Source of the DNA: Selaginella moellendorffii
Taxonomy: Eukaryota > Plantae > Lycopodiophyta
Reading direction: 5' to 3'
DNA: 64,000 nucleotides
Assembly: GCF_000143415.4 (NCBI RefSeq)
Contig: NW_003314271.1
Coordinates: 372,001-436,000 of the forward strand
Part shown: piece after piece, positions 38,484-64,000 of the stretch
How positions within the stretch are numbered: position 1 is the stretch's first letter
How the letters are laid out: the number at the start of each line of letters is the position of its first letter
Translations under genes and position numbers: made by a program
The notes under the pieces: generated by a model
Told to the model about the DNA's origin: nothing
Databases searched by the model: none
Seen by the model: only the letters and a program-made list of their open reading frames with translations

Positions 38484-39100
38484 ATTTGCTAGGGATGATA
38501 AATGAGATGAAATAACCTATCTAGTGTCAAAGCACTTATCTTAACATTTTCAGAGATTCTAAGTAAAAGCCAGAACTCGCCTTCTTCTTACACTGGAAAA
38601 AAAAATTTAAAAAAATAAAAACGAAGACTATACAATGAGAGCACAATCTGTACACACCTTAATCTGTAAACAAAAGAGACTAATCTAGCAACCAATAAAA
38701 CCTAGACACAGGACTGGCACACCTTTTCCAGGGCGTGGTGAGCAACTGTGAGAGGTGGGTGGGGTTTGCAAGTTAGAGAACTCACCTTGGGCTTGTTCTC
38801 TCTCGCAAAAGGACAGCAACTGCAAACTCTCTGATGGTTCTGGCTGTGAAGGCTGGCTCTGGCTTCAGCTCTACCACTGGATAGCATCCACAAACCCAAA
38901 TGAAGACATTTCAAATTTTCACAGCACACAAAAATCCAGATTGTTGGGGTTGGGGGCCAAATTAGCGGCTGCTGGGCTGACTGTGAACACAGACCTTTGC
39001 AGGAAGAAGCACAATTGCTGCGATTGCCACTGATCCGGCAAGCAAGCGTTCCAGCAAGCAAGCGTTAGCTCAATTGCGGCAGGGCATCCAGGGCGAGCTA

Positions 39101-39830
39101 AGAAGAACGGGCACGGGGGCAGGACACCACTGGCACACGTGTCGCTGTGCCTTCTTCTCCCGCCCCACGCGGCTTGGCCGCCTCCCATTGGTCCCTGAAT
39201 TCCCTCGCTCTCGCCTTTCGAGCTTTGTCGCTAAAGATCCTCGCAATGGCCTCAGCAATCTCCTCCCGCTTCACAAACACGTCGGAGCTCCTCCCGTCCG
39301 AAACTTCCACCCCGATGCGGCACCTCTCCGCCATGATCTTGCGGTTGAGCCCCTCCTCGTATATCCGAGGCCAGCAGATGATCGGCACGCCGCTGGAGAC
39401 GCTCTCCAGGACCGAGTTCCATCCGCAGTGGCTCACGAATCCAGCCACTGCCCTGTGCGCCAGAACTTCTCTCTGCGGCGCCCATGAAACCACCAGGTCT
39501 CGTCCCTTGGTCCGCTCGACGAAGTTCTTGTAGAAGTCACTGTTCTTCACCAGGACTGTCGTGTCGCCCTCGTCCACGAACTGGGGCGGCCTGACTGTGA
39601 GCAAGAACGGCACCTTGCTCGCCTCCAAACCGAGCGCGAGCTCCTCGAATTCCTCCTGCGAAAGCTTCGCTATGCTGCTGCCGAATGCGACATAGAGGAC
39701 TGAGTCTGGCTCCTGGGTGTCGAGCCAGTCGAGGCATTCAGAAGAACGGGCACGGGGGCAGGACACCACTGGCACACGTGTCGCTGTGCCTTCTTCTCCC
39801 GCCCCATGCGGCTTGGCCGCCTCCCATTGG
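39101..39830. repeat. Pair of 91-bp direct repeats (39101-39191, 39740-39830) flanking the UGT fragment
   Basis: 'agaagaacgggcacgggggcaggacaccactgg...cctcccattgg' occurs twice with one substitution. Confidence 0.9.
39192..39739 (-). pseudogene. Family-1 UDP-glycosyltransferase C-terminal fragment
   Basis: 'ECLDWLDTQEPDSVLYVAFGS' and PSPG box 'WAPQREVLAHRAVAGFVSHCGWNSVLES...WPRIYEE'. The N-terminal acceptor domain is absent. Confidence 0.9.
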
Positions 39831-42800: not shown

Positions 42801-43109
42801 TTCCGGACGAGAGCTTTACTTCTTTTCCGTGCCGCTTGTACGAGCATGGTCGCGTCACTTCGAACTTGTTTTCGTTTGGCTTGTACAGGCGTGAGCGATC
42901 AATTCTTATATCTTATGGACAGGAAAGCTCTTCTTGTCTGAAATTGTTCAAGAATTGATTGAAGAATTGGTGATCCTAGCTCACAAGCGAGGAAACGGCT
43001 GTTATCTTGCAGAAATGAATCAAGACTCAAGAACACCACAGGTTCTAATATTTCTGAATTGTGTTTGCGCTCTTCTTTCACTCTTCCTCTCATAAAGTAT
43101 GGGATTGAC

Positions 43110-43260
43110 CAAAATACACGAATATTTTGAATATATTCAACGTAACCTTCAAATATTTTTTATCTGGAAAGAATACCTTGGCACTTGACGGAAACGAATA
43201 TTTTGAATATAACCTTCAAGAATACCTTGGCACGTGATGGAACAATAAACTAAGTCCAGA
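43110..43260 (+). promoter_or_regulatory. Internally repeated GGPPS-like promoter with G-box CACGTG (43231)
   Basis: Repeated 'gaatattttgaatat...ccttcaa...aataccttggcac' units. Copy 2 has two G-boxes (52557, 52634). Confidence 0.4.
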
Positions 43261-43314
43261 CTTGTGTTGGCACGAAAGGTCACAGCATCAAAGCTAAGCA
43301 GGAAAGTTTCAAGC

Positions 43315-44304
43315 ATGAACCAGCAGATCAATGGCCTCGTCCTCCCTCCGAGAATCCACTACCGCCGCGTCGCCGCCAGCGCCGCCCCCGGCACCACCAC
43401 CACCACCAAGTCCAGCAAGTTCGACTACGATCTCTATGTCAAGACCAAGCGCGAGGCCGTGTCCATCTCCCTCCACCGCGCTTTCCCCCCGCCGCTCAAG
43501 CAGCCCGAGACGCTCAAGATGCACGACGCAATGCGCTACGCGGTGGGCGGCGGGCGGCGGACGTGCCCCATCGCTTGCATCGCAGCGTGCGAGCTGGTGG
43601 GCGGCACCCAGGACGACGCCATGCCGGGAGCCTGCGCGCTTGAGATGATCAAGGCCAGCTTCTGCGTCCAGGACGATCTCCCGTCCATTGACGACTCGGA
43701 GCTCCGCCACGGCAAGCCCACCGTCCACCGCGCGTTTGGCATACCCACGGCGCTCTTCGCGGGAACCGCGCTGCTCGCGCTCGGCTTCGAGCACCTGGCG
43801 GCGCGCTACAGCGGCGATACGGCGGCGAGGATGGTGGCGGAGGTGGGCCGGGCTATCGGGTCAACGGGTCTGCTGGCCGGTCAAGCCGTGGACCTGGGCA
43901 TCGAGAACCCGGACCGCGGGGTAGAGCTGGAGACGCTCGAGTTCGTCCACCTCCACAAGACGTCGGCGCTGCTCGAGGCGTCGTTGGTGGCCGGGGCCAT
44001 TGCTGGTGGCGCGAGCGAGCAGGAGATTGAGGCGCTGAGAGCGTATGGACGGGTGACCGGGCTTCTCTACCAGATCGTGGATGATGTCGCGGACGCTACC
44101 AAGACAATGGAGGAGCTCGGGAAGATCCCGGGCCAGGACGCGATGGCGGGCAAGAGCACGTATTCCACCATCTTGGGAGTGGACAAGTCGAGGGAGATGG
44201 TTGGGCAGCTGTTGGTGGAGGCCAAGGAACGATTGGGTGTGTTCGAGGAGACCAAGGCACTGCCGCTGATCCACCTAGCCGATCACTTTGCTAATTGGGC
44301 TTGA
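43315..44304 (+). CDS. Intronless GGPP-synthase-like trans-prenyltransferase with atypical active site
   Basis: FARM 'DDLPSIDD', SARM 'YQIVDDVAD', 'GQAVDL', 'HLHKT', CxxxC 'CIAAC', 'GKSTY'. Short Ala/Thr/Ser-rich N-terminal extension. Confidence 0.9.
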   Translation: MNQQINGLVLPPRIHYRRVAASAAPGTTTTTKSSKFDYDLYVKTKREAVSISLHRAFPPPLKQPETLKMHDAMRYAVGGGRRTCPIACIAACELVGGTQDDAMPGACALEMIKASFCVQDDLPSIDDSELRHGKPTVHRAFGIPTALFAGTALLALGFEHLAARYSGDTAARMVAEVGRAIGSTGLLAGQAVDLGIENPDRGVELETLEFVHLHKTSALLEASLVAGAIAGGASEQEIEALRAYGRVTGLLYQIVDDVADATKTMEELGKIPGQDAMAGKSTYSTILGVDKSREMVGQLLVEAKERLGVFEETKALPLIHLADHFANWA

Positions 44305-44395
44305 GACTTTAGTTTGGTATAATGACTATTGTTGTTTCTTATTATTATTATTATTATGAGTTTAACACAACAATAATAGAATCAACTGGAAATAA

Positions 44396-46439
44396 TTATT
44401 TGAAGCTCAGAAGTTGTGTGGCTTTTTTCTGGATAGTCTCCCAAGCCTTAATAACATGCTTAACCTCAGTTAAAGTACCTCCAACGGCCATTCGCAACAA
44501 AAAATCCCCCGAGAGCACCTGTTTTTCAGGTGTTTGGGTCATTACATGGTGGCATGATGCATTTAGAAACTTACTGTATGTGTGATGAATGTTGTTTCGT
44601 TTGAATTCACTGCGTGAAGTAAATTTTCATTGAGAGCATTTACGGAACTGGCCTCAATTGCTTTGAGCCTGAAGCAAACAAGTCCAAATCTGCAAGGCAC
44701 TAAAACCTGCAATACAAACTTCTTTGCTATACTGAATTCAAATTTAAGAAGTTGAATTTCACGAACCTCGAAACGTTTGTCTTCAGTGACTTTTCTCTCG
44801 AAAAGCCTAGCTAGGCAAGTATGATGTATGATATAGTTTTTAAGTTTGGAGGAGCCATAAAGTCGCATGACAAGCCACAACTTCAGAGCTCTAGAAAGAA
44901 ACAGACCATGATATGTGCCAACAATTAAAACATAAACAAAGCAACAACCTGAATCTTTTTCCGAGTGATACTTGCCAGTCCTTGAAATCCACGACTTCCC
45001 CCGCCTCAGATGCCTGTACTAAATAAACAAAATGATAATTAATTAATTACTCCACACCTTGTTACGAAGATATTCTGACTGGACCGAAAGCGTTGAAGTC
45101 AAGGTCCTTGCATTCTTTAATATAACACAAGTAAGAAGTGGGAATAACTTAGCAACAATACCTTAACCCATAATACAGAGCAATCTAGATTTGTCAAGAG
45201 CCATTTGTGAGTTCCAACATTGAGTGAATCAGCCTTCTCGATGCCATCCAAGAAATGCCTATACTCGGGGCATATGCACGCACTGCCTCCGTATGCGGCA
45301 TCTACGTGAAACCACATTTCATATTCCTGGCAAATGGATCGATTATCAAAGCAAGCAACAAGCAAACAAAGTTGGAAATGCCAGATTACCTGAGCAATTT
45401 CACCAAGGTCTAGCAATGGATCTACAGCGGCGGAAGACGTGGTACCAAGCTGCAATAAGAGCGTTATGTAAGGATGCAGAAGACCCACGTATCACAGTAC
45501 CGTGGCACCCAGATACAGTGGTATGACATCGTCCCCGCCTTCCTCAATAGCTCCACGCAAGAGAGCAGGCGAGAGCGCGTAGTTTGTTTCCTTGGTTGTG
45601 GGCAGCACCACCAGCTTGATGCCCGCAATCTTACAGGCCTTGTGCAAGCACATGTGAGTCTGATCCGACGTGTACGCTCGGAGTCTGCGCACCACGTCTT
45701 CCTCTACAAGCCCATTTGGCGTGTGCTTCGAAATGGCTCGACTCCGGGCGGCACACAGTGTGACGAGCATTCCCTCGGTCGCTGAGCCTTGGATGACGCC
45801 CCCGCCTTTGCCTAGAGAGTAAAACAAGCAATACGTAAGGCGAGACGTGGCAGTGTGTGATAGACCTGATGATCCCGAGAGGAAGGAGTCTGGCAGCTCG
45901 AGAAGCTTTCCCAACCAGTTTACGACAATAATCTCCAGCTCCGTGGCCGCGGGTGAGGCGATCCAGCTGAAGTTGACGGTATTGAAGCCGGAGATGAGGA
46001 TCTCGGCTAGAATGCCGGCGGTGCTACTGTTTGCCGGATAGTAGCTGAAGAAGCTCGGGCTCTGCCAGTGCGTGAGGCCGGGAATGATGATGTTGCTCAC
46101 ATCTAAACAGCCACATTGCCAGATTTCATGAGAGATTCGATGATATAGACGGGAGTACCAACCAGCAAGAATGTCATCGAAGGACTCTGGATCTTGAGGT
46201 GCAAATGCGGGGATTAAATCATTCAAGTATCCTGGCTGCACACAGTAGTACAAGTGAGTAGTGACGAGGGAGGAGGAACAGGAGAGAAACGTGAAACATA
46301 CACTAACTTGGCTTCTGACCGGAAACTTCTCAATGTGGCGATAGTAGTCGGCCACAAAATCCACCATTCGGTGGGCATGCTCCCGAAACTCCTCAGAGTC
46401 CATCAACTTGAGGCCGGGTGGTGGTGCCGATTCGCCCAT
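44396..46439 (-). CDS. Divergent aromatic amino acid decarboxylase AADC2a (appears intact)
   Basis: '[20 protein letters not shown]', 'SPAATELE', 'HVDAAYGG', '[17 protein letters not shown]', 'VQSEYLRNK', '[14 protein letters not shown]'. Stop TAA at 44396-98. Confidence 0.92.
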
Positions 46440-46598
46440 CTCTGAGCTCTCGGGCTATGGCTCCTCAATCAATAATCTTCCTCCCACGTTTTCTATCTGG
46501 ATCGTATGTTTAGTAAGAGAGTTTCTTTAATCTTTGGCAAGTTTCTTTTACTACCTAGGTATATTTCTAAATTCTATCAAGTCTTGGTGAGAGTGGCA
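46440..46598. promoter_or_regulatory. 159-bp putative bidirectional promoter between AADC2 and methyltransferase A (copy at 55871-56029)
   Basis: Divergent ATGs at 46439(-) and 46599(+). Confidence 0.6.
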
Positions 46599-47807
46599 AT
46601 GGCTGTGGACAACCAGGAGCTTGAAGTGTTTTACGATGAAGGATGTGTGGTGTATGAAGCAGTGTGGGGTGAGCATATGCATTCGGGTTACTTCGATGCT
46701 GGCAACACTCGCGACTTTCGAGCGGCACAAATCCGAATGCTCGAGGAGCTCTTGGCCTGGGCAGGAGTACCGGGTAAGCATTTCAATCGCTCCGAGACAC
46801 ACCCTTTTACAATGTGTGCATCTAGACGACGAGCAAAGCCGGCCAAGGAACATTCTGGATGTGGGCTGTGGATTTGGAGGAACATCTCGGTATCTATCCA
46901 ATAAGTACTCCGCGAATGTCACAGGAATAGCATTGAGTAAGTACGAGATTGGCAGAGCTAGAGCCATTGCAAAGGCAGAGGGTGTTTGTGACAAGGTATT
47001 GCTCTACCATCGCACAAATCAAAAGCATCTTCTTGGTTCATTCAGGTGGCATTTCAAGTGGCAGATGCTTTGAGTCTGCCCTTCGAAGACAACCAGTATG
47101 ATCTGGTTTGGTGCATGGAGTGTGCCGATCATATTGCAGATAAACTCAAGGTAAAACACTCTCATAGAGTTTGAGCTTCATATGTTACTATTTCTTCGTC
47201 TGAGCAGCTAATGCAAGAGATGACGCGTGTGGCCAAGCCCGGAGGCTGGGTTGTGCTCACAGGATGGTGTCACCGAGAGTTTACCCATGGCGAAACTTCA
47301 CTCAAGAAGCATGAGCTGGTCATAGATTTAATCAAGACTGAAAACGTGAGTTAAATTATATTTTAATATATGTGATTTGTGTTTGCAGAAGATCCTGGAC
47401 AAAGTCCGTGCAGCATATCTTCTTCCACCTTGGTGCCAGACATCTGATTACAAAGTTATAGCAATCGACGCGGGTTTGCAAGTGTGTGCTGTAATCTCAA
47501 TATAATATTTAGAGTTTACTGTGATTAATGTTGCCAGGGGGTAAAAGTGGAAGACTGGACACGGCACATGCTTCCGTTTTGGGGTCTGCTCACTGCAGAG
47601 ATCTTTACCTTGAGAGGCGCATTCAAGATTTTGACATCAGGTAATACAAAACTTTCACAAGAGTCTTACCTCTCTAATGAGTAAACAGGATGGGCACATC
47701 TTCGTGCAAGTATATCCTTGGCATATCACTTCTCCTACATGGACAAAGGATTCAAGACTGGCGTTTTCAAGTATGCTGTGGTTATGGGAAAGAAAGATAA
47801 GAAGTAG
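46599..47807 (+). CDS. gamma-tocopherol-methyltransferase-like SAM methyltransferase, type A copy 1 (7 exons, no transit peptide)
   Basis: 'FYDEGCVVYEAVWGEHMHSGYF', 'ILDVGCGFGGTSRYL', 'FQVADALSLPFEDNQYDLVWCME', 'RVAKPGG..WCHR', 'LPPWC', 'EDWT..MLPFW'. Ends GKKDKK*. Confidence 0.9.
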
Positions 47808-47937
47808 TTCCAGTAGCAGGAGACTTGCCTCCTTTATTATCTGTTTTGATTCATAAAGGTCGAACAATTGACACAGCAAATCATCAATAATAATTCATTA
47901 TTTCTTACACTGGATCGCCAGCGTCTTTGTTCTTGCA

Positions 47938-48270
47938 ATGGCCAGCGAGATCGAAGAGATTTATGATGAGGGATGCGTGGTGTACGAGGCCGTGTGGGGC
48001 GAGCATATGCACTCGGGCTACTTTGAGGCGGGCAAGCCTGGGGACTTTCGAGTGGCACAAGTCCGAATGATCGAGGAGGTCCTCTCTTGGGCCGGAGTAC
48101 CAAGTAAGCTTCCCTCTCTATTCTATTACAATCTCCTAGATGATGAGCAAAGCCGGCCTCGAGACATACTGGACGTGGGCTGCGGTTTTGGGGGAACTTC
48201 TCGATATCTGTCCAAGAAGTACTCGGCAAATGTGAAAGGAATAGCACTGAGCGATTACGAGATCGCCAGC
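47938..48270 (+). pseudogene. Truncated type-C methyltransferase (exon 2 joined to 3' flank)
   Basis: Matches the 58387 gene up to 'gagatcgccag', then jumps to sequence resembling 59610 onward. Confidence 0.85.
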
Positions 48271-50064
48271 TCCATTGCTCCTGTTTTTCTTTCTATATAA
48301 AAATATCTTTGTGAAGTCCAAATTTATGAAGGTATGCAGACCTCATTGTGTTTACAATCCACTTGTGCATGGGGCATGGAGCATGGGATCAGTTAACCAA
48401 TTAGTTACTTAACGTTCATCGCCCACCTTCTCTCACTCTTGTGGTCTTATAAAATATATGACAATAATATTTGTAAGTATAGAATACCATATATTGAACA
48501 ATGCTACTCTATCGCATTATATACAATTGTTGAAATTCATTTCTAAATCTTTTAGTCGGTATCCCAAAACCGTGTAAACAATGAATGAATATACTGGGTC
48601 TTGCAGCTTCCAGCTGGAGCTGGGTTGGTATTCGTAATTTGTATGAAAGGGAATGGGGCACCATACCTAATCTGCATTCAGTGTATATTAGATTTTAACT
48701 TTGAAAATGGTGCTAGATATCTTTATTTTTATTGAAGAAAGTCTTATATTTATTTATTCATATTCAAGTTGGTTCATGAGATGCTCGTGGGACACAAGTG
48801 TATATTGTCAATTGTCATTGGGGAAGGAGGGACAGAGTGCCTGGAGGAGCAGGCCCTGTCGCCCCTGGCTCCCATGAGGTCCGGGAGGTTGTGTGCGTTG
48901 AAAACGAGCAGGGTGCTTGGCAGTCGTAGACGACGTGTCTTTACGTCTGCTTTGCATCTCGCGGGGTGACTGGTGTATGTCGTCGTCCGAGCTCGACGAG
49001 CAACAAGTGACAAGCAATCTCGGACTTTTACATAGTGAATACCATCTAACAAGGAGAAACAGCGGCAAAACTAGGGGCGATGGTAAGATACTTCATGTTT
49101 GACCGAAAGGATTAAAATACATTGGAAACAGACTTATGCAGCGTACAATATCTTTTGAGAATCTCAACCCCACTGACGAGAATCGAGCAATGGTGGCTGA
49201 AAGTACTTCACGTGCTCTTGGGCCTCTTCAAGCTGCTCCGGTTGACAAGAATGGTGGCCTTGTGTGTGTTCTACTGGAGCTCTACGCTTGAATTATCTAC
49301 ATGACTTTGTTTTCGGTGCCCGTCAAGCGTGTGCGAGAACGACTGACGCTGTGGAAGTTAGTGTTTCTGACTTAAAAACATTTTGCCAAAGATTTCTTGA
49401 CAGTGGAGCCCTTTGACAGATTGGTCACAAGCTTTATCAAATTACGATAGAGCCAACACAAATAAAAAAAGTTGTTGTCCAATCACATCCAGTAGTGCCT
49501 GCCATTCCCCATGCCTCCTGCTATGGTGGCTGTGACGGTGATGAACAGCAAACAATCCTCCTAGCCAGCGCAAGCTTGTGGTGTCTCGAGGTGCCCCGTG
49601 AAGCATGTGTGTGACCGATTAACACTCATTCACAAGGGCACGGCACCACAAGATTCAAAACAGCATTAGATAGAGAGAAAAAATTTGCTGGCCAGAGATG
49701 CAAAAGACTCATGAAAGTGGAAAACTTACTGGTGACAAGCTTGATCGACGTAAGATAGAGCCAACACAATTCCAATCGGGCAGGACGTGGAACGTGCGAT
49801 GGATTAGAGAGTGACCTCCTTGTGGTGTTGCGCCAACACAATCAAGACAATTCTCGTCCAGTGCCAATTCACATACCACACGCTTCCTGCGAGCTGTATT
49901 CTTGGTGGCTGTGATGTTGGTGAAGTGGTTACAATCCTCTTTACTAGTCCAAGCTTAAAGTTTGAAATAAAAATGCTGCATTTGTGACAAAAACAATTGT
50001 CATTACTAGCATCCATTAGAAAATATTGATTGTTGAAAATTAAGTTGGAATAAATAATTGTTGT

Positions 50065-50098
50065 GTCAGGATTCGAACCTGCGCAGGCAAGCCCACAT
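50065..50098 (-). other. tRNA-Ser-like 3' half fragment (variable arm plus T arm), not a full tRNA
   Basis: Minus strand reads 'atgtgggcttgcctgcgcaggttcgaatcctg', with B-box GTTCGAATCC and a Ser-type long variable arm. There is no D arm or anticodon. Confidence 0.55.
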
Positions 50099-50119
50099 CC
50101 CCACACTTCGGGTATTCCA

Positions 50120-51085
50120 CCACTTGGGTGGCACACTTGTTCAGAAGTTCAAGCTGGTGATACTTGAAGGGCTCCACTCTGTTGCCTATGAGATGCAAAT
50201 AGAGCTGTAAGTTATGCAGTGCCTGATTCTCAGGTTTGTGCTTCAGATAAGTCAAGCCTGTGTGGACAACTTCCAGCACCACCCCAACGTGAGATACGTA
50301 GCCCAGAGTGCTTCCCGGAAGCTTGGTAACCACATCCAAGGGATTAACCACGGTGAGGACTCGGAGGCTCTGCAACCTTTCTGCCGCCACCTTGAACGCA
50401 TGGTTGCCACCTTGACGACCACCTAGGGCAAGTGCGGTCACCGGGATCAGCTTACCATTGGGACATGTCGTAGGCACACAGGATTGCGAGCGAAGCTCCA
50501 AAACTATGCCCGGCCACAGTGATGCTCAATTTTTCATCAATGAGGCTCCTGAGCGTGGAAACTATCTGATCACGGGCACAGAGGTGTTTCCAAACTCCTC
50601 GCCTGGATAAGAACGAGTGTAAAGTGTGGATACATGGTCGGACACCAATACGGGCGACGAGCTTCCGGCCGCCACTGCTAGTTTCACTGTATTCAGCCGA
50701 GGGAGGGGCAAGAGCGAGTCGATCTCCGACCATTCCCGAGTGAGCTCCATGCCCCGAAACGCAGGGAGGATGTCTCTTCGTCCCAGCCTCAAGCTTTCTT
50801 CATCATGGCCAGGTAGCCAGACCTGGCCATATGATCTGTATCTTTGGTGCTGCCATAGATGTACTTGTGTATCGTGTAGCCGGTGTTGCCCATCTGGAGC
50901 TTGTGGAATAGCTGTGACTTGCCATGAATGCACAGGCCATACCAGCGAGATGCTTGACTTCGTTGAATCCATCCACCACGCATTAGATGTGCTGGCCGTA
51001 GCGGATCAGCTCCTGGCAGAGAGTTTCGTCCATGGGATTCCCAAGCATGCCTTTCCAGAATGTCTGGCTTTGGACTATCCATTTC
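50120..51085 (-). pseudogene. Class-3 lipase pseudogene, inverted paralogue of the 63226 gene
   Basis: 'QTFWKGMLGNPMDETLCQELIRYGQ', 'SITVAGHSFGASLA', 'VVNPLDVVTKLPG', 'HNLQLYLH'. Several frameshifts and deletions. Confidence 0.88.
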
Positions 51086-51377
51086 CCTGTTAGAGATGGT
51101 GCCGAGAAATGAAGAGACAAAGACTTCGAGTATGATAGTACTTTTAGGTTTGCCAAATTGCCATGTCCGTATTCGATCGAAAAGCTGAAGGTATGCCCAC
51201 TGTCAGTGCAGCGGGCGAGAAGCTTTAGTCCATGCTTCCTGCTGGACAAGCTTCTTTTGTTCGTACATCATGGCAGAAAAACTTTTGAAAACGTTTAAAG
51301 AACTTACAGAAATTCGGCAGGTCTAGGCTATTGGGAACAAAAAAGAATAAAGAATAAAAAAACTAAAAGAAAGATCG

Positions 51378-51596
51378 AGCTGCAAAGGCATCCAAGCATC
51401 CAGAGTGCGTTCATGACTTTTTGTCATGGGTCCTTGAGTTTGCATAGGGCAGAAGTTGGTGTGCCAAAGTTGCCATTGCTACTCTCCAACTTTGCATTTA
51501 GTCCTGCTTCGAGTTACAAGCACAGCCCCAGGATGCACGTTATCATCGACGCACCTCGAGGCATCCAGCTGGTTGTCCACAAACTCAGCGAATGAT
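51378..51596 (+). pseudogene. 3'-terminal remnant of the P450 gene, inverted
   Basis: Degenerate match to the last exon of 60833..62568, ending 'SPRMHVIIDAPRGIQLVVHKLSE*'. Confidence 0.88.
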
Positions 51597-52735
51597 AAAA
51601 CACTGCTGGAACGTTCTTGTTTACTCTCGAGAAAGACAATCAATGAGGGAACACATAAACGTACTGCTAGAAGTTAAATGAAGAAATTCGACCAAGCGTG
51701 CGTAAACTGCAGGAGTGACTACAGCTCTCTTAAGATGCTCACAAGGTGTAAATTAGCTATTTCCAGGTTACAGCTCAAAAGGTAGTTTCTCGTATTGACA
51801 TGGCTGCAAGTAATAATTTCTTGTCACACGAGCATCTCATGACCAGCTCTGTTCAAAAGGTTAAATGGTTCGCCAGGGGTAACTTCTGCAGAAAAATCAC
51901 AGTGACGTTTCTCCACAAATGCTTCTACAAATCGTTGTACTTAAATGTCATTTCGAACTTCTTGCCTTCCACCCCAGTGTCGTCATGAGTAGCCCTATCA
52001 CCTTTGTCGCGAGCCTGATACCAGCGTCAATGACTAACACCAACAAGTGACCCGTTTGTGTACCGATAAGCTGAATGTACCATAATCCATGAGATATCCA
52101 ACTATCCTTGAAGAGCTAAACAAATCATAATTAATTAAAACGACATAAAAACATGTTCAGGAAATGGTGGATCAAGGTACTCACATCTGAAGAAACTGTA
52201 TGCATCAGTTTCGAGTAAGCCATGGAGTGCACCCATTAACTATATTACATTTATATATTTACTGTGTATATTTATATATTTACAATATGAAGATGACCGA
52301 TCTGTTCTGTTTAGCTGCAAGAGGAAGAACAACCATGAAAACATACAAAGAAAAAGTTTTCGACTTACATGCCATAGGATTGGAGAGAGCAGCGGGGCGA
52401 TGGGAGCTGGACCAATTCTTGTAACCACAGGTTCTAATATTTCTCAATTGTGTTTGCGCTCTTCTTTCACTCTTAGTACGGGATTGATCAAAATACACGA
52501 ATATTTTGAATCTATTCAACGTAACCTTCAAATATTTTTTATCTGGCATACCTTGGCACGTGATGGAACAATAACTTGACCAAAATACATGAACATTTTG
52601 AATATAACCTTCAAATATTCAAGAATACCTTGGCACGTGATGGAACAATAAACTAAGTCCAGACTTGTCTTGTTTGTGCTGGCACGAAAGGTCAGTCACT
52701 ACTCAGCATCAAAGCTAAGCAGGAACGTTTCAAGC

Positions 52736-53694
52736 ATGAACCAGCAGGTCAATGGCGTCGTCCTCCCTCCGAGGATCCACTACCGCCGCGTTGCCGCTAG
52801 CGCCGCCCCCGGCACCACCACCACCACCAAGCCCAGCAAGTTTGACTACGATCTCTATGTCAAGACCAAGCGCGAGGCCGTGTCCATCTCCCTCCACTCG
52901 GTTTTCTCCCCGCCGCTCAAGCAGCCCGAGACGCTCAAGATGCACGAGGCAGTGCGCTACGCGGTGGGCGGCGGGCGGCGGACGTGCCCCATCGCTTGCA
53001 TCGAGGCGTGCGAGCTGGTGGGAGGCACCTAGGACGACGCCATGCCGGGAGCCTGCGCGCTTGAGATGATCAAGGCCAGCTTCTGCGTCCAGGACGATCT
53101 CCCGTCCATCGACGACTCGGAGCTCCGCCACGGCAAGCCCACCGTCCACCGCGCGTTTGGCATCCCCACGGCGCTCTTTGCGAGCACCGCGCTGCTCGCG
53201 CTCGGCTTCGAGCACCTGGCGGCGCGGGCGAGGATGGTGGCGGAGGTGAGCCGGGCTATCGGGTCAACGGGTCTGCTGGCCGGTCAAGAACCCGGACCGC
53301 GCGGTGGAGCTGGAGACGCTCGGCCTCGAGCAGCGCCGACGTCTTGTGGAGGTGGACGAACCGGGGCCATTGCTGGTGGCGCGAGCGAGCAGGAGATTGA
53401 GGCGCTGAGAGCGTATGGACGGGTGACCGGGCTTCTCTACCAGATCATGGATGATGTCACGGATGCTACCAAGACAATGGAGGAGCTCGGGAAGATCCCG
53501 GCCAGGACGCGATGGCGGGCTTAACGAGGATCCATTGGAGAGCAAGTCTAGCTCCAATAGCGTATATCAAAGCCATCTTGGGCGTGGACAAGTCGAGGGA
53601 GATGGTTGGGCAGCTCTTGGTGGAGGCCAAGGAACGATTGGGTGTGTTCGAGGAGACCAAGGCACTGCCTCTGATCCGCCGATCACTTTGCTAA
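52736..53694 (+). pseudogene. GGPPS-like pseudogene
   Basis: CAG>TAG at 53030-53032, plus internal deletions, frameshifts and a foreign insert near 53520. Confidence 0.92.
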
Positions 53695-53811
53695 TTAGGC
53701 TGTTTTTGGAGACTATATTACTATTGTTGTTGTTGTTGTCGTTATTATTATTATTATTATTATTATTAAGTTTAAGTTTAGCACAACAATAATAAAATCA
53801 ACTGGAAATAA

Positions 53812-55870
53812 TCATTTGGAGCTCAGAAGTAGTGTGGCTTTTTTCTGGATAGTTTCCCAAGCCTTAATAACATGCTTGGCCTCAGTTAAAGTACCTCCAA
53901 CGGCCATTCGCAACAAAAAATCTCCTGAGAGCACCTGTTTTTCAGGTGTTTAGATCATTACATGGTGGCATGATTCATTTAGAAACTTACTGTATGTGTA
54001 ATGAATGTTGTTTCATTTGAATTCACTGCGTGGAGTAAATTTTCATTGAGAGCATTTACAGAACTGGCCTCAATTGCTTTGAGTCTGAAGCAAACAAGTC
54101 CAAATCTGCAAGGCACTAAAACCTGCAATACAAACTATTTTGTTATACTGAATTCAAATTAAAGAAGTTGAATTTCACGAACCTCGAAACGTTTGTCTTC
54201 ACTGACTTTTCTCTCGAAAAGCCTAGCTAGGCAAGCATGGTGTATGATATAGTTTTTAAGTTTGGAGGAGCCATAAAGTCGCATGACAAGCCACAACTTC
54301 AGAGATCTAGAAAAATACAAACCAATTAGATATGTGCCAACAATTAAAACATAAACAAAGCAACAACCTGAATCTTTTGCCAAGTGATACTTGCCAGTCC
54401 TTGAAATCCACCACTTCCCCCGCCTCAGATGCCTGTACTAAATAAACAAAATTACAATTAACTAATATTTACTCCACACCTTGTTACGAAGATATTCTGA
54501 CTGGACCGAAAGCGTTGAAGTCAAGGTTCTTGCATTCTTTAATATAACACAATATACTTTAGTAAGAAGTTGGAATGACTTAGCAACAATACCTTAACCC
54601 ATAATACAGAGCAATCTAGATTTGTCAAGAGCCATTTGTGAGTTCCAACATTGAGTGAATCAGCCTTCTCGATGCCATCCAAGAAATGCCTATACTCGGG
54701 GCATATGCACGCACTGCCTCCGTATGCGGCATCTACGTGAAACCACATTCCATATTCCTGGCAAATGGATCAATTATCAAAGCAAGCAACAAGCAAACAA
54801 AGTTGGAAATGCCAGATTACCTGAGCAATTTCACCAAGGTCTAGCAATGGATCTACAGCGGCGGAAGACGTGGTACCAAGCTGCAATAAGAGCGTTATGT
54901 AAGGATGCAGAAGACCCACGTATCACAGTACCGTGGCACCCAGATACAGTGGTATGACATCGTCCCCGCCTTCCTCAATAGCTCCACGCAAGAGAGCAGG
55001 CGAGAGCGCGTAGTTTGTTTCCTTGGTTGTGGGCAGCACCACCAGCTTGATGCCCGCAATCTTACAGGCCTTGTGCAAGCACATGTGAGTCTGATCCGAC
55101 GTGTACGCTCGGAGTCTGCGCACCACGTCTTCCTCTACAAGCCCATTTGGCGTGTGCTTCGAAATGGCTCGACTCCGGGCGGCACACAGTGTGACGAGCA
55201 TTCCCTCGGTCGCTGAGCCTTGGATGACGCCCCCGCCTTCGCCTAGAGAGTAAAACAAGCAATACGTAAAGCGAGACTTGGCAGTGTGTGATAGACCTGA
55301 TGATCCCGAGAGGAAGGAGTCTGGCAGCTCGAGAAGCTTTCCCAGCCAGTTTACGACAATAATCTCCAGCTCCGTGGCCGCGGGTGAGGCGATCCAGCTG
55401 AAGTTGACGGTATTGAAGCCGGAGATGAGGATCTCGGCTAGAATGCCGGCGGTGCTACTGTTTGCCGGATAGTAGCTGAAGAAGCTCGGGCTCTGCCAGT
55501 GCGTGAGGCCGGGAATGATGATGTTGCTCACATCTAAACAGCCACATTGCCAGATTTCATGAGAGATTCGATGATATAGACGGGAGTACCAACCAGCAAG
55601 AATGTCATCGAAGGACTCTGGATCTTGAGGTGCAAATGCGGGGATTAAATCATTCAAGTATCCTGGCTGCACACAGTAGTACAAGTGAGTAGTGACGAGG
55701 GAGGAGGAACAGGAGAGAAACGTGAAACATACACTAACTTGGCTTCTGACCGGAAACTTCTCAATGTGGCGATAGTAGTCGGCCACAAAATCCACCATTC
55801 GGTGGGCATGCTCCCGAAACTCCTCAGAGTCCATCAACTTGAGGCCGGGTGGTGGTGCCGATTCGCCCAT
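53812..55870 (-). CDS. Divergent aromatic amino acid decarboxylase AADC2b (appears intact)
   Basis: Same exons and motifs as AADC2a. Stop TGA at 53812-14. Confidence 0.9.
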
Positions 55871-56029
55871 CTCTGAGCTCTCGGGCTATGGCTCCTCAAT
55901 CAATAATCTTCCTCCCACGTTTTCTATCTGGATCGTATGTTTAGTAAGAGAGTTTCTTTAATCTTTGGCAAGTTTCTTTTACTACCTAGGTATATTTCTA
56001 AATTCTATCAAGTCTTGGTGAGAGTGGCA

Positions 56030-57238
56030 ATGGCTGTGGACAACCAGGAGCTTGAAGTGTTTTACGATGAAGGATGTGTGGTGTATGAAGCAGTGTGGGG
56101 TGAGCATATGCATTCGGGTTACTTCGATGCTGGCAACACTCGCGACTTTCGAGCGGCACAAATCCGAATGCTCGAGGAGCTCTTGGCCTGGGCAGGAGTA
56201 CCGGGTAAGCATTTCAATCGCTCCGAGACACACCCTTTTACAATGTGTGCATCTAGACGACGAGCAAAGCCGGCCAAGGAACATTCTGGATGTGGGCTGT
56301 GGATTTGGAGGAACATCTCGGTATCTATCCAATAAGTACTCCGCGAATGTCACAGGAATAGCATTGAGTAAGTACGAGATTGGCAGAGCTAGAGCCATTG
56401 CAAAGGCAGAGGGTGTTTGTGACAAGGTATTGCTCTACCATCGCACAAATCAAAAGCATCTTCTTGGTTCATTCAGGTGGCATTTCAAGTGGCAGATGCT
56501 TTGAGTCTGCCCTTCGAAGACAACCAGTATGATCTGGTTTGGTGCATGGAGTGTGCCGATCATATTGCAGATAAACTCAAGGTAAAACACTCTCATAGAG
56601 TTTGAGCTTCATATGTTACTATTTCTTCGTCTGAGCAGCTAATGCAAGAGATGACGCGTGTGGCCAAGCCCGGAGGCTGGGTTGTGCTCACAGGATGGTG
56701 TCACCGAGAGTTTACCCATGGCGAAACTTCACTCAAGAAGCATGAGCTGGTCATAGATTTAATCAAGACTGAAAACGTGAGTTAAATTATATTTTAATAT
56801 ATGTGATTTGTGTTTGCAGAAGATCCTGGACAAAGTCCGTGCAGCATATCTTCTTCCACCTTGGTGCCAGACATCTGATTACAAAGTTATAGCAATCGAC
56901 GCGGGTTTGCAAGTGTGTGCTGTAATCTCAATATAATATTTAGAGTTTACTGTGATTAATGTTGCCAGGGGGTAAAAGTGGAAGACTGGACACGGCACAT
57001 GCTTCCGTTTTGGGGTCTGCTCACTGCAGAGATCTTTACCTTGAGAGGCGCATTCAAGATTTTGACATCAGGTAATACAAAACTTTCACAAGAGTCTTAC
57101 CTCTCTAATGAGTAAACAGGATGGGCACATCTTCGTGCAAGTATATCCTTGGCATATCACTTCTCCTACATGGACAAAGGATTCAAGACTGGCGTTTTCA
57201 AGTATGCTGTGGTTATGGGAAAGAAAGATAAGAAGTAG
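56030..57238 (+). CDS. gamma-TMT-like methyltransferase, type A copy 2
   Basis: No difference from 46599..47807 seen by eye. Confidence 0.88.
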
Positions 57239-57368
57239 TTCCAGTAGCAGGAGACTTGCCTCCTTTATTATCTGTTTTGATTCATAAAGGTCGAACAATT
57301 GACACAGCAAATCATCAATAATAATTCATTATTTCTTACACTGGATCGCCAGCGTCTTTGTTCTTGCA

Positions 57369-58173
57369 ATGGCCAGCGAGATCGAAGAGATTTATGATGA
57401 GGGATGCGTGGTGTACGAGGCCGTGTGGGGCGAGCATATGCACTCGGGCTACTTTGAGGCGGGCAAGCCTGGGGACTTTCGAGTGGCACAAGTCCGAATG
57501 ATCGAGGAGGTCCTCTCTTGGGCCGGAGTACCAAGTAAGCTTCCCTCTCTATTCTATTACAATCTCCTAGATGATGAGCAAAGCCGGCCTCGAGACATAC
57601 TGGACGTGGGCTGCGGTTTTGGGGGAACTTCTCGATATCTGTCCAAGAAGTACTCGGCAAATGTGAAAGGAATAGCACTGAGCGATTACGAGATCGCCAG
57701 CTCCATTGCTCCTGTTTTTCTTTCTATTTTAATATATGTGATTTGTGTTTGCAGAAGATCCTAGACAAAGTCCGTGCAGCATATCTTCTTCCACCTTGGT
57801 GCCAGACATCTGAATACAAAGTTGTAGCAATCGACTCGGGTTTGCAGGTGTGTGTTATAATTTCAATATATTATCTAGAATTTATTGTGATTAATGTTGC
57901 CAGGGGGTAAAAGTGGAAGACTGGACACAGCACATGCTTCCGTTTTGGGGTCTGCTCACTGCAGAAATCTTTACCTTGAGAGGCGCATTCAAGATTTTGA
58001 CATCAGGTAATACAAAACTTTTGCAAGAGTCTTACCTCTCTAATGAGTAAACAGGATGGGCACATCTTCGTGCAAGTATATCCTTGGCATATCACTTCTC
58101 CTACATGGACAAAGGATTCAAGACTGGCATTTTCAAGTATGCTGTGGTCATGGGAAAGAAAGGTAAGAATTAG
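57369..58173 (+). pseudogene. Chimeric methyltransferase: truncated type-C 5' part fused to a diverged type-A 3' half
   Basis: Junction near 57727. Exons 3-4 are missing and the last three exons are A-like, ending GKKGKN*. Confidence 0.8.
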
Positions 58174-58386
58174 TTCCAGTAGCAAGAGACTTGCCTCCTA
58201 ACTCCAAACTTATTCTCTGTTGTGATTCATAAAGGTCGATCACAGGTGACAATTGACAAAGCAATAATTTAATCATCAATAATAATTCATGATTTCTTAC
58301 ACTAGGAAGGAATTTTAGCGTGAGTCCTAGCCGCGGGGGAGGATCTTGCGGCAGTTCCCGTAAGCGCCAGTGTCTGTGTTCTTGCA

Positions 58387-59598
58387 ATGGCCAGCGAGAT
58401 TGAAGAGTTTTATGATGAGGGATGCGTGGTGTACGAGGCCGTGTGGGGCGAGCATATGCACTCGGGCTACTTTGAGGCGGGCAAGCCTGGGGACTTTCGA
58501 GTGGCACAAGTCCGAATGATCGAGGAGGTCCTCTCTTGGGCCGGAGTACCAAGTAAGCTTTTGATCATGGTATCCCTCTCTATTCTATTACAATCTCCTA
58601 GATGATGAGCAAAGCCGGCCTCGAGACATACTGGACGTGGGCTGCGGTTTTGGGGGAACTTCTCGATATCTGTCCAAGAAGTACTCGGCAAATGTGAAAG
58701 GAATAGCACTGAGCGATTACGAGATCGCCAGAGCCAAAGCCATCGCGAGGGCGGAAGGAGTTTCAGACAAGGTAGATTCCACTCCGTTGTTTGGGGCTGT
58801 TTCTAACACTTAACGAACAGGTGACGTTCCAAGTAGCAAATGCACTGAATCAACCGTTCGAAGACGGCCAGTTTGATCTCGTCTGGTGCATGGAATGCGC
58901 AGTGCACATTGAGGACAAACTCAAGGTAGAAGAATTCATAATCTTTTCATCTGGGTTTGTTTAAATCCCGCACGCGATTGCAGCTTGTGCAAGAGATGGC
59001 ACGCGTGACCAAGCCCGGAGGTCGGGTGGTGCTTGTGAGCTGGTGCCACAGAGAACTGAAGCCTGGAGAAACTTCACTCAAGAAGGATGAGCAAGTAAGC
59101 GAAGTTCCTAGATATTTCTTGATCCCTTAAAAAGATTGTCATAACATATGGCTTCAGGCGCTCTTGGATAAGATCTGTGCTGCTTACTTCTTTCCACCCT
59201 GGTGCGCCACTTCAGAGTACGAAACATTAGCATGCAATGCGGGTTTGCAAGTAAGACTTCGGGTTCTTCATCGACTCTATGGCTGATCTTATGTATTATC
59301 TGATCTGTAGGAAGTAAAGGTGGAAGATTGGACTCGACACATGCTTCCATTCTGGGGAATGCTCACGGGCCAGCTCTTTACATTGGGAGGTGCATTCAAG
59401 CTCCTGACATCAGGTAAGTAAAGATCTTGTTACGTGTCGCAGCTTTAGTTTCTCGTTTTTATTTCTTGCTTTCCAGGGTGGGCACATATGCGGACAAGTC
59501 TGTCATTGGCTTACCACTTCTTCTACATGGACAAAGGCTTCAAGAATGGCACCTTCAAGTATGCCGTGGTGGTGGGAAAGAAAGAGCTGTTATCATAA
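58387..59598 (+). CDS. gamma-TMT-like methyltransferase, type C (7 exons, intact, no transit peptide)
   Basis: 'MASEIEEFYDEGCVVYEAVWGEHMHSGYF', 'LDVGCGFGG', 'FQVANALNQPFEDGQFDLVWCME', 'RVTKPGGRVVLVSWCHR', 'LLDKICAAYFFPPWC'. Stop TAA at 59596-98. Confidence 0.9.
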
Positions 59599-60832
59599 GG
59601 GAGCATTGGATTCCCCATTGCTTCTGTTTTTCTCCAAATTTATGAAGGTATGCAATCCACTTGGAGCATGGAATCAGTTAACCAATTAGTTACTTTTCAC
59701 GTCCATCGCCCACCTTCTCCATCTCCCTGCGGAACCATATCATTCTTGAAGTATCTTACCATCCCCACCGGTGTCGTGTTAACCTTGTTCTTGTTAGATG
59801 GTAAAAAACTTACTACTATGTAAAACTTATATAAACATGAAGTTAACATTTGAAATAGTCCGAGATGGCTTGTCACCCGTTGCTCGTCAAGCTCGGACGA
59901 CGACGTACACCAGCGAGATGCAAAGCAGACGTAGAGACACGTCGCCAGCAGCCCCATGCTCGACTTCAACGCACACGACCTCCCGGACCTCATGGGAGCC
60001 TGGAGCGACAGGCCCTGCTCCTCCAGGCACTCTGTCCCTCCTTCCCCAATGACAACTGACGACACCACCCTCACTAAAGAACGACGTCTCTTATAATTCC
60101 TTTATTTTTTGTTTAAAAAAGCGTGTATAGCCCGCAAGAGCACATGCTCCTGCGGGCTAAAGAAGACTATATACGCATGATCTATCTATGTATTTATCTT
60201 GCGGCCCACGAGCATCTCATGAACCAACTCGAATATGAATAAATACATATACTTGACCAACTTCAATAAAAACCATTTTCAATGGCATCTGTCACTCAGG
60301 TATGATACCCCATTCCCTTTCATACACTATAATTACGAATACCCCCAGCTGGGAGCTGCAAGACTCAATATATTCATTCTTTCATATATTGTTTACATGG
60401 TTTTGAAGCAAGAGACCAAAAGATTTAGAAATGAATTTCAACAATGCATTGCTCAATATAGATTAAGTATAGTATTCTATAACTACAAATATCACCTGTA
60501 TTATTAAAGTCATATAAGAATAAAATCTTTTATAAGACCTGTTTGACCAAAAGGATTAAAATACATATAATATCTAACCCCATGAGATGCTCGTGGGACA
60601 AGAAATTAAAGACTACCTTAAAAAAGGTTTTGTGCTGTAACCTGGAAATAAGAGAGCTGTAGTCACTCCTGCAGTTTACGCACGCTCGGTAGAATTTCTT
60701 CACTTTGACATTCACAACACTGAGCAAATCAACCGCAAGGTATGGACAACTTCTAGCAATACGTTTATGTATTCCCTCATTGATTGTCTTTCTCGAGAGT
60801 AAACAAGCTGAGAACGTTCCAGCTGTGTTTTA

Positions 60833-62568
60833 CTATTCGCTGAGTTTGTGGACAACCAGTTGGATGCCTCGAGGTGCGTCGATGATAACGTGCATCCTGG
60901 GGCTGTGCCTGTAACTCGAAGCAGGACTAAATGCAAAGTTGGAGAGCAGCGTAGCAATGGCAACTTTGGCCTCTAACAACGCCAACGTCTGCCCTATGCA
61001 AACCCGAGGACCCATGACAAAAGGCATGTACGCACTCGGGTGCTTGGATGCCTTTGCAGCTCCTTGCGAAAAGCGCTCCGGGTTGAACTCATTTGCATCG
61101 GCTCCCCACAGCTCTGGGTCGTGGTGGAGCCAGAGAAGTGGAATGGTGACTTGCGTGCCCTCAGGAACTTTGATCCCTCCCAAAACCGTGTCTTTGGAGG
61201 CTACTCTCTGGACTTCAGAGATTGCTGGATAGAGCCTCAGTGTCTCGTAAAGAATCATCCCCACCTATAAGTTGAACTTTAAAGAGCATTCGAAAAGGCT
61301 GTGAGAAACCTACCAGCTTGAGCTTGTCAAGAGCGCCAACCTGGGAGTTCTCCTTGAAGTGTTCTTGGACCTCGGCTCGGGCTCGGTTTTGCCAGTCGGG
61401 GTTGAGGGCGAGCATAAAAAGAGTCCACCCGAGTAAGCTGCCGGTTGTTTCGTGCCCGGCAAGGAAGAACGTCTTGCATTCGTCCACCACCACCTTGTCA
61501 CTGAATCCTGCAGACTTGTCGCTCTCCTCCAGGATCAAACCAAGCAGATCATCTCCATAGTTGCCGGAGCTTCTTCTCCGTTCATGGATCAAGCTCATCA
61601 CGGTCCTGTCAATCTCTCTCTTCACCTTCCAAATCTTACGATTGAGAGGGCACGGATAGTAACTGGCATTATAGGATTGTGTGTCAGCAGACTTTCGATT
61701 GGTGGAAAATGCATACCTGAAGAGTGGAAGCCAAAAGTAGCTCTGGGCCTCGAGTGCTAAATCACCCAGCACTGTGAGCCCACGAAAGACTTGCTCACCT
61801 TTTTCATAGTTGGCACCAAAGGCAACGTGAGAAATGAGGTCTGCGGCGAGCTTCTTCAAGTCGTGCGCCACTTCTAGCTCGGCTTGTCCGTGAGGAACAC
61901 AAGTTTTCCATTTGGCGACCAGTTTCTCAGAACACGCTCGAATCCTTGCATACATTGCCTAGAAATGGAATCCGTGATCTCTATCTAGATTGCAGAGAAA
62001 ACAAGTCAAATCTATGCCTACCTTCAACTTGAGCGTATGAAATGCTGGAGAAAGCACATTTCTCCGCTGAGACCATTCCTGGCCGCCTTCCAGCCCGAGG
62101 ACTCCATGGCCTACAACGTCAATCACGACCTGAACTTGATCGCTCGACTTGGGGAAGTTTTCAAACTGCCTGGACAGGATCTCGCGAGCACAGTCGGGAT
62201 CGAAGAATGTGACATCGGGAACATCCAGGGACCTTGTCAAGTATGGCTTTCCTGCGGCACATTTTCTCTGTAGAGAGGGAAGTCTGTATAGAAAGCACGG
62301 CCTTACCATACTTGGACGACCACAAGACAACTTCGGGCGTGACATGAGCGACAATGTCGTGACAGGTTTCCATCACCTTGCCCTGGTTCTCAATCCTCAT
62401 CTGGTATTGCTGGCCACTGTTGCCAGCCAAGAACTTGGGCGGCGGTCCCTTGAGCCCCTGCTGCTTTAGTATCCCCTCTATTCTCCTCGAGCGCCTCCAT
62501 GGTCGCGCAAGCCTCCAGAGCAGCGCCGCGCAAATGCCCACCACACCAAGCACAAGCAACGCAGCCAT
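60833..62568 (-). CDS. Cytochrome P450, CYP72 clan (5 exons, appears intact)
   Basis: N-terminal anchor, 'QGLKGPPPKFLAGN', 'DECKTFFLAGHETT', 'ETLRLYP', 'HHDPELWGADANEFNPERF', heme motif 'FVMGPRVCIG'. The five-exon layout is typical of the CYP72 clan. Confidence 0.93.
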
Positions 62569-62572
62569 AGAG

Positions 62573-62595
62573 CTCTCTCTCTCTCTCTCTCTCTC
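62573..62595. repeat. (CT/GA)n microsatellite directly upstream of the P450 ATG
   Basis: ctctctctct... run. Confidence 0.85.
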
Positions 62596-63225
62596 CGTTT
62601 CGGCTTAATGCTAGGTTAGCAATGAATCTTGCTCTTAATCCAGCCCCGCATTTGATGCGAGTAGAGCTAAGTTCGCTTGGTTTCTCTCTCTTCTTGATCT
62701 TTCTTTTTTTCTTTTTTGTTCCCAGACAAGGAAGCAGGAGTGTAAGTTCTTTAACCCTTTTCAAAAATGATGTACGAAGAACAAAAGAAGCTTGTCCATG
62801 GACCAAAGTTTCTGGCCCGCTACGAGGACGAACTCGCTCGCGAGGGGTGCACACAAACCAAGAGACAGAGGGACGTGCCCACGAAGCCAACAAGAGGCTC
62901 GAAAAGGTGATCAGTTTCTTTCTAGCCATCTACGTGACCGGGGGTGTGTCCGAGCTCGGCCCTGAAGGTTCAATTCTAGTAGAAATATTTCGAAGGTCCG
63001 GCGTCTGAAGCATTCCCATCGGATGACTGTTGTCTCCCGCACCACAATGGCTCTTAAGCTGCGATCGAATGCCCGACCTTTTGCCACGACGCTCTTCTTT
63101 TCAAAGCATGGCAAACTCTGAAAAGCAACACGTCCTGAATTATTGTTTAATTTACATTAGGTACTCGAGCAAGAAAATTCAACCCTGCTTTAGATCGATA
63201 CCTAGATCTAGGTGGCTTGGATACA

Positions 63226-64000
63226 ATGGCCAATCGACTCGCATCATCTCTGGCAAGCAAATGGAAGCTAGTCCAAGGCCAGACATTCTGGAAAGGCATG
63301 CTTGGGAATCCCATGGACGAAACTCTCTGCCAGGAGCTGATCCGCTACGGCCAGCTAATCCAATGCGTGGTGGATGGATTCAACGAAGTCAAGGCATCTC
63401 GCTGGTATGGCCTGTGCATTCACGGCAAGTCACAGCTATTCCACAAGCTCCAGATGGGCAACACCGGCTACACGATCCACAAGTACATCTATGGCAGCAC
63501 CAGAGATCGCCCCCGTCTAATCACAGGTACTGGTACCACCAGGGAGCCCCACACTGGATGGTCTGGCTATCTTGCCATGTCGAACGACCAAGAAAGCTTG
63601 AGATTGGGACGAAGAGACATCCTCCTTGCGTTTCGGGGCATGGAGCTCACTCGGGAGTGGTCGGAGATCGACTCACTCTTGCCCCTTCCTCGGCTGTATC
63701 CAGCGAAACCGGCAGTGGCGGCCGGAAGCTCGTCGCCCGTGTTGGTGTCCGACCATGTAGCCTCACTCTACACTCACTGCTATCCAGGCGAGGAGTTTGG
63801 AAGCACTTGTGTCCGGGATCAGATTGTTTCCACGCTCAGGGGCCTCATCGACGCAAACAGGGACGAAGAGCTGAGCATCACGGTGGCCGGGCATAGCTTG
63901 GGAGGTGCGCTTGCAACCCTGTGTGCCTACGACATTGTCAACGAGAGTGTCAACGCAGCTCCCAATGGTAAGATGATCCCGGTGACCGCATTTGTCATTG
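63226..64000 (+). CDS. Class-3 lipase / phospholipase A1 (DAD1/PLA1-II-like), intronless so far, runs off the window
   Basis: Open frame from ATG 63226: 'WKLVQGQTFWKGMLGNPMD', 'ELIRYG', 'WSGYLAMS', 'RLGRRDILLAFRG', 'SITVAGHSLGGALATLCAYD'. Confidence 0.88.
   Translation, partial: MANRLASSLASKWKLVQGQTFWKGMLGNPMDETLCQELIRYGQLIQCVVDGFNEVKASRWYGLCIHGKSQLFHKLQMGNTGYTIHKYIYGSTRDRPRLITGTGTTREPHTGWSGYLAMSNDQESLRLGRRDILLAFRGMELTREWSEIDSLLPLPRLYPAKPAVAAGSSSPVLVSDHVASLYTHCYPGEEFGSTCVRDQIVSTLRGLIDANRDEELSITVAGHSLGGALATLCAYDIVNESVNAAPNGKMIPVTAFVI

Follow-up and report, generated by a model that had tools for sequence, protein, structure and literature searches.

Probable duplication of a candidate metabolic gene cluster, with complementary gene losses, in the lycophyte Selaginella moellendorffii

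In this study, we have explored a 64,000-nt stretch of the Selaginella moellendorffii genome (GCF_000143415.4, NW_003314271.1, positions 372,001-436,000 of the forward strand; hereafter the window, to which all coordinates refer) that holds a candidate seven-gene alkaloid cluster. The overall explanation that we favour, and consider probable, is that duplication of a stretch of about 12 kb gave two units in head-to-tail order, that the two copies went through complementary losses, and that part of unit I was recently copied into unit II in the course of a repair. By Pfam and protein matches, five enzyme families lie within 12 kb, and the cluster families (GGPPS-like, AADC, the methyltransferases MT-A and MT-C, P450 and class-3 lipase) occur in two tandem, head-to-tail units: unit I (43035-52423, from the block map of the self-alignment; 9.4 kb after its own deletions) and unit II, which starts at 52424 and runs past 64000, with an end predicted at about 65.7 kb from the sizes of the deletions and of one insertion. 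Our approaches were self-blastn, sensitive self-alignment, global alignment, Pfam, PDB and protein matches, and coordinate-based splicing; MT-A, MT-C and P450 were compared through exon-sized references, database protein identifiers and local coordinate scripts, and the other haplotype of the assembly was compared at the protein level (annotated proteins and accession order).

Two tandem units, block by block

The left parts of the two units form a direct repeat (43035-48306 against 52424-57737) that is 94.2% identical over 5389 columns by self-blastn. The original prediction had recognised the doubling of the cluster and had let the repeat end at 48306; both the doubling and the repeat are confirmed, but the self-alignment pairs the units beyond this position too, where unit I remains collinear with unit II in a rearranged form. 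The ancestral order would have been GGPPS-like (+), AADC (-), MT-A (+), MT-C (+), P450 (-) and lipase (+). AADC and MT-A stand head-to-head 160 bp apart, and P450 and lipase head-to-head 657 bp apart. These are compact genes, with the introns of 40-70 nt found in S. moellendorffii.

The right half of unit II carries the only intact MT-C of the window (58387-59598, +; seven exons, 289 aa), followed by a CYP72-clan-like P450 (60833-62568, -), identified by signature motifs and by Pfam and protein matches, and by lipB, a class-3 (PLA1-like) lipase (63226-64000, +). The P450 appears intact, with an open path of about 500 codons in a coordinate-only splice search whose last intron is doubtful and whose exon borders are approximate. 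The lipase frame stays open as far as the window reaches and corresponds to residues 1-258 of an annotated 402-aa protein, its last 144 codons lying beyond the window. The claim that all three genes are intact in this unit therefore stands for MT-C, apparently for the P450, and for the lipase as far as the window shows.

In unit I, the same sequences are found as pieces. A stub of MT-C (47938-48269, +) contains exon 1 and most of exon 2 and ends at a breakpoint, GCCAG, equivalent to 58731 in the intact gene; a 107-bp filler (48270-48376) takes the place of exons 3-7 (58732-59661 in unit II), and a direct match to the MT-C 3' flank (48377-48432, +, against 59662-59719; 91% identical) comes next. 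It is followed by an inverted copy (48467-49102, -) of the intergenic block 59740-60492 (about 0.75 kb) and by a 27-bp direct link (49096-49122) that matches 60540-60566. Further to the right lies lipA-psi, a lipase pseudogene (49807-51102, -) that covers residues 6-356 of the 402-aa lipase and has no ATG (the start-codon region is replaced or deleted), one CAA-to-TAA stop and at least six frame-breaking indels. Next to it are a remnant of the shared P450/lipase promoter region (51210-51374, -, matching 62821-62685) and a remnant of the P450 (51377-51841, +, matching 61062-60581) that consists of the end of the last exon and the 3' flank only. Lipase, shared promoter and last P450 exon have been inverted together as a single block, which lacks 1.6 kb (62685-61062) including the P450 ATG and earlier exons. 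The remnants of MT-C, lipase and P450 thus lie where they had been predicted, with two amendments: the lipase and P450 pieces are inverted relative to the intact genes, and the MT-C stub at 47938 is also present in unit II (57369-57700). We also note that the JGI model SELMODRAFT_409177 (343 aa, 'Phospholipase A1'; 49807-52223, -) is built on lipA-psi together with out-of-frame and antisense-looking exons, and is not a real protein.

Taken block by block, pairs between the units exist for all six gene families and for three noncoding blocks, in an order that is conserved save for two local inversions; 1.3 kb of unit I, in two blocks, lacks a partner inside the window. This collinearity past the MT-C breakpoint supports the proposal that the duplicated unit included P450 and lipase. 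The lengths fit a copy of the whole unit as well: a predicted unit II of about 13.3 kb, minus 0.93 (MT-C), 1.6 (P450), 0.3 (promoter) and 0.94 kb (insertion), gives about 9.5 kb, and 9.4 kb is observed for unit I. Jukes-Cantor (JC) divergence between paired blocks is 0.05 for the P450, 0.107 for the lipase and 0.10-0.15 for the noncoding block, which overlaps with the old part of the direct repeat (0.06; synonymous divergence, dS, of 0.11 for AADC). Overall, dS or JC values are 0.05-0.15 for most paired blocks, with a dS of 0.23 for the lipase pair, and earlier gene conversion may blur these ages; the neutral divergence accumulated since the duplication would be about 0.1 per site. We had considered an older event for the inverted pieces, given their blast identity of 81%, and rejected it, as a substitution-only count removed most of the difference.

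Complementary losses, selection and a recent copying tract

Working GGPPS, AADC and MT-A genes are present in unit I, which has lost MT-C, P450 and lipase; unit II has lost GGPPS only and keeps AADC, MT-A, MT-C, the P450 (apparently intact) and the lipase (seen to the window end). Reciprocal loss, as originally proposed, is therefore found in this haplotype, each unit having lost at least one family that is intact in the other. Neither unit is self-sufficient, and together they provide one working copy per family and two of AADC and MT-A. Retention and loss went largely by promoter-sharing pairs, AADC/MT-A being kept in both units and P450/lipase being lost jointly in unit I. There, MT-C would have been lost through an internal deletion of 0.93 kb, and the P450/lipase pair would have been inverted before a 1.6-kb deletion took the 5' part of the P450 and part of the shared promoter; the lipase also lost its start codon and decayed. 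In unit II, the GGPPS-like gene was lost through frameshifts.

The two GGPPS-like genes illustrate the contrast between an intact and a broken copy. G1 (43315-44304, +) is intact and intronless, encodes 329 aa with both Asp-rich motifs, and its exact protein was found in the protein collection; the polyprenyl synthase sequence (43264-44304, +) is closest, by Pfam and PDB/protein matches, to plant plastidial GGPPS large subunits. G2-psi (52736-53708, +) is a pseudogene, as had been predicted: its global alignment with G1 reveals seven frameshifting indels (-20, -13, -1, +35, +1, -5 and +4 nt), an in-frame loss of 18 nt and two in-register stop codons. The pair has a dS of 0.091 and a dN/dS of 0.67, which is what one would expect if one lineage was constrained and the other free, with death soon after the duplication. 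The RefSeq protein XP_024528824.1 (279 aa) joins 43315-44076 to 53447-53521, that is, the intact GGPPS spliced to G2-psi over a 9.4-kb 'intron', and is either a mapping artefact or a read-through transcript between the tandem units.

Both AADC genes are intact, with 11 exons and 494 aa each (copy 1, XP_024528822, 44396-46439, -; copy 2, XP_024528821, 53812-55870, -). The 11 exons of copy 2 account exactly for its RefSeq protein, and the exons of copy 1 give an open frame of 494 codons identical to its own RefSeq protein; the copies differ at 8 residues, and all three small indels are intronic. In codons 291-494, the 3' half that has not been converted, dS is 0.109, dN 0.013 and dN/dS 0.12, with 6 nonsynonymous against 14 synonymous changes (binomial p = 8e-6); in codons 1-290, dS is 0.005. 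The coding sequences thus support the view that purifying selection has maintained both copies. An older paralogue, the third AADC in the window, lies at 17502-19616 (-), its protein pieces being 43-70% identical to the cluster AADC.

MT-A, a gamma-TMT/CMAS-like methyltransferase gene of seven exons and 300 aa, is identical in its two copies (46599-47807, +, and 56030-57238, +). It shares 70% DNA identity with MT-C, each having six canonical introns at matching positions, and these methyltransferases match CMAS-type and Methyltransf_25 profiles. The identity of the MT-A copies belongs to a longer tract (45147-48296 in unit I, 54578-57727 in unit II) with 6 differences in 3150 bp, grouped in two small patches: one at 45319, one at 45341 and four within 45809-45914 (4 in 105 bp), followed by none in the 2382 bp of 45915-48296. 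On a coarser scale, 43035-45300 shows 129 substitutions (2195 aligned bp) and 19 indels (JC 0.061), and 45301-48306 shows 9 substitutions and no indel. Such a near-identity tract with mosaic patches, set in an older divergence, is characteristic of a recent gene conversion between loci or of a recent templated repair, and it resembles what is seen between tandem paralogues in that it starts in homologous sequence within an older divergence of 6%.

The right end of the tract differs from such conversions. The two MT-C stubs agree in their breakpoint and in the 27 nt that follow it, beyond which unit I continues into its filler and unit II into intron 4 of MT-A; the second stub and the first 27 nt of the unit I filler (57369-57727, +) came in with the recent tract, and exons 5-7 of the original unit II MT-A (57728-58170, +) survive to its right, 4.8% diverged and free of lesions. 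Probably, the older MT-A of unit II was broken within its intron 4 and then repaired on the unit I template. Leftwards, the repair would have overwritten the 5' part of MT-A and the 5' half of AADC; rightwards, it would have inserted 0.94 kb, in which the 3' end of MT-A from unit I is followed by the MT-C stub and by 27 nt specific to unit I, before rejoining at a 3-bp microhomology, TAT. The tract therefore ends without homology, with 0.94 kb of extra donor sequence, a microhomology rejoin and a chimeric MT-C::MT-A frame. Unit I as donor and unit II as recipient is the simplest reading of this structure, because the reverse direction would need an older duplication ending exactly at that junction. 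A RefSeq 156-aa 'tocopherol O-methyltransferase' model (57369-58170, +) is a chimera of MT-C exons 1-2 and the overwritten MT-A exons 6-7, in which the middle of the fold is missing, and would have been created by the recent repair.

These data bear on two proposals about selection. Selection on the complete gene set, which the original prediction had read from the survival of one working copy per family, does not follow from it, since any needed pathway would show the same pattern after duplication. Extra dosage of the entry steps, a proposal on two genes, would find support in AADC only (dN/dS of 0.12); the two MT-A copies are uninformative, their identity being due to recent copying and no evidence on selection or constraint.

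The other haplotype and alternative readings

The assembly contains two haplotypes, with a typical difference of 7-9 bp per cDNA between the members of an allele pair (PMC3095285). On a 2,757,670-bp scaffold of the other haplotype, one AADC is annotated (TYDC1-2), which has the derived residues E276 and A370 in common with copy 1, and one GGPPS, which is 98% identical to G1 and has a 9-nt insertion state and three residues in common with G2-psi. Two intact lipases are found there; one is 95.3% identical to lipB, and the second (396 aa) agrees with lipA-psi at 15 of 24 diagnostic residues. As both lipases are intact on that scaffold, the lipase duplication predates the split of the haplotypes and the death of lipA is not fixed; on this protein evidence, neither is the loss pattern fixed in the species, the lipase type that is dead here being intact there. 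Accession order suggests that the GGPPS of that scaffold lies between the two lipases, in the position of the dead copy here. We would therefore put forward, tentatively, that the two haplotypes have resolved the duplicated cluster differently, as a segregating structural polymorphism in flux through gene conversion, with selaginellic acid maybe as the cluster product. On a third scaffold (1,705,930 bp), the 211-aa model SELMODRAFT_418400 is an A-type lipase fragment fused to unrelated sequence, and pieces of the lipase family may be present at yet other places in the genome.

Several points weigh against a duplication of the whole unit. The dS of the lipase pair is above that of AADC and GGPPS, and this pair may be older, or the left part of the unit may have been homogenised earlier. 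The window contains no partner for the blocks 49122-49807 and 51841-52423, for which partners are predicted past 64000, and remnants alone cannot prove that the P450 and MT-C of unit I were ever complete. In addition, the annotated proteins of the other haplotype include only one AADC and one GGPPS of this type, and the two-unit structure may not be shared.

One could accordingly suppose that only the 5.3-kb left part (GGPPS, AADC, MT-A and the MT-C stub) was duplicated, and that other events left the lipase and P450 remnants, an older lipase paralogue already present upstream being one conceivable source. A lipase dS about twice that of AADC or GGPPS, the inversion of the remnants, and the adjacent accessions of the A-type lipase and the sole GGPPS on the other scaffold (XP_002970321 and XP_002970322) would all suit this account. 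We nevertheless regard it as unlikely: the direct matches at 48377-48432 and 49096-49122 connect the MT-C breakpoint with the inverted blocks and stand in the correct order, the lipase remnant still stands head-to-head with the promoter and P450 remnants as in unit II, and the arithmetic of unit lengths favours a whole-unit copy.

It is also improbable, in our view, that a single replication-based rearrangement with serial template switching made the direct and inverted pieces at once, in which case MT-C and P450 of unit I would have been fragments from the outset and would never have decayed. Such an event would account for the 107-bp filler, for the clustering of breakpoints (60492-60540 and 60566-60581), for the clean single end point of the MT-C stub and, at the later junction, for the 3-bp microhomology. 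It sits poorly with the MT-C 3' flank, which stays direct after the deletion as a simple internal deletion would leave it, and with the lipase copy, which is nearly full length and of a type that is intact on the scaffold of the other haplotype, so that lipA-psi was once a working gene. Finally, the presence of two haplotypes in the assembly (PMC3095285) and the 2.4 kb that are identical between copies could recall an allele of the other haplotype misplaced in tandem, an assembly artefact that we find very hard to credit, because three distinct AADC, three GGPPS and four lipases occur in one diploid plant (a third version of AADC and of GGPPS and two further lipases having their own 2,757,670-bp scaffold), the left 2.2 kb differ by 6% and 19 indels, far above the difference of allele pairs, and the mosaic pattern indicates gene conversion.

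Surroundings, possible product and meaning

Upstream of unit I, at a distance of 4.5 kb and in an AT-rich stretch, lies an apparently autonomous Helitron (34101-38483, -) with a 1003-aa ORF carrying Helitron_like_N and a 406-aa PIF1-helicase ORF; a sensitive self-search found no sequence link between this element and the duplication. What looks like a small, internally deleted LTR element lies at 25729-28098, where ORFs with retrotransposon gag and aspartyl-protease domains stand between two direct repeats of 377 bp that are 98.7% identical. In a UDP-glycosyltransferase ORF (39098-39901, -), which may be a fragment or a tailoring gene of the cluster, the domain is represented by its C-terminal half; a direct repeat of 91 bp occurs at 39101 and 39740. 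Four long ORFs of 324-522 aa (29147-30715, -; 31478-32956, -; 7092-9361, -; 14867-15841, +) gave no Pfam match.

As to what the cluster may produce, the pyridoxal-phosphate (PLP) decarboxylase at 44396-46439 is closest to plant TyDC/TDC and matches CrTDC (6eew) and PsTyDC (6eem) end-to-end, with E values of 1e-162 to 1e-176; the nearest AADC outside Selaginella is 49% identical. Its catalytic-loop Tyr is kept (exons 7-8, 44948-45114, -), which points to a decarboxylase and not an aldehyde synthase. Another site holds a Gly, as in CrTDC of Catharanthus, where PsTyDC of poppy has a Ser; we take a Gly at this site to favour indole substrates, and the sequence thus hints at an indole-type substrate for the cluster AADC. 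The end-to-end AADC match and the methyltransferase profiles recall the plant AADCs and the gamma-TMT-like N-methyltransferases of indole alkaloid pathways. As product, one could reasonably predict an oxidised arylalkylamine that bears N-methyl and prenyl groups. Selaginellic acid, a pyrrolidinoindoline alkaloid, occurs in S. moellendorffii (PMC5385659), and hordenine glycosides are present in Selaginella doederleinii (PMC3650682). Being prenylated and N-methylated, selaginellic acid may be a candidate, as it would suit a gene set that comprises a putative indole-type AADC, a P450, an enzyme of prenyl diphosphates and two predicted N-methyltransferases.

Plant metabolic clusters are known to evolve by tandem duplication and subsequent differential gene loss, as in the related thalianol and marneral clusters of Arabidopsis. 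The likeness lies in a multi-gene block of unrelated enzyme families that was copied and whose content then diverged through deletion, inversion and pseudogenes; in S. moellendorffii, however, the copies have remained side by side and seem to act in a single pathway and not in two, and the host is a lycophyte. Reciprocal gene loss, or divergent resolution, has also been described for whole-genome duplicates, where, as here, redundant copies die at random and different survivors remain in each copy. The present case is on a scale of 10 kb at one locus, and the copies are linked, hence no hybrid incompatibility is expected. Random complementary loss after duplication is a well-known evolutionary principle, and in this respect the case is ordinary in kind.

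In conclusion, our results offer the base-pair-level history of a compact plant cluster that was probably copied, pruned and re-homogenised, in a lycophyte; to our knowledge, no biosynthetic cluster has been worked out in this group. Three public gene models of the region are artefacts of the duplication, with a read-through transcript as the alternative for XP_024528824.1. For expression of the pathway, GGPPS must come from unit I, and MT-C, P450 and lipase from unit II.

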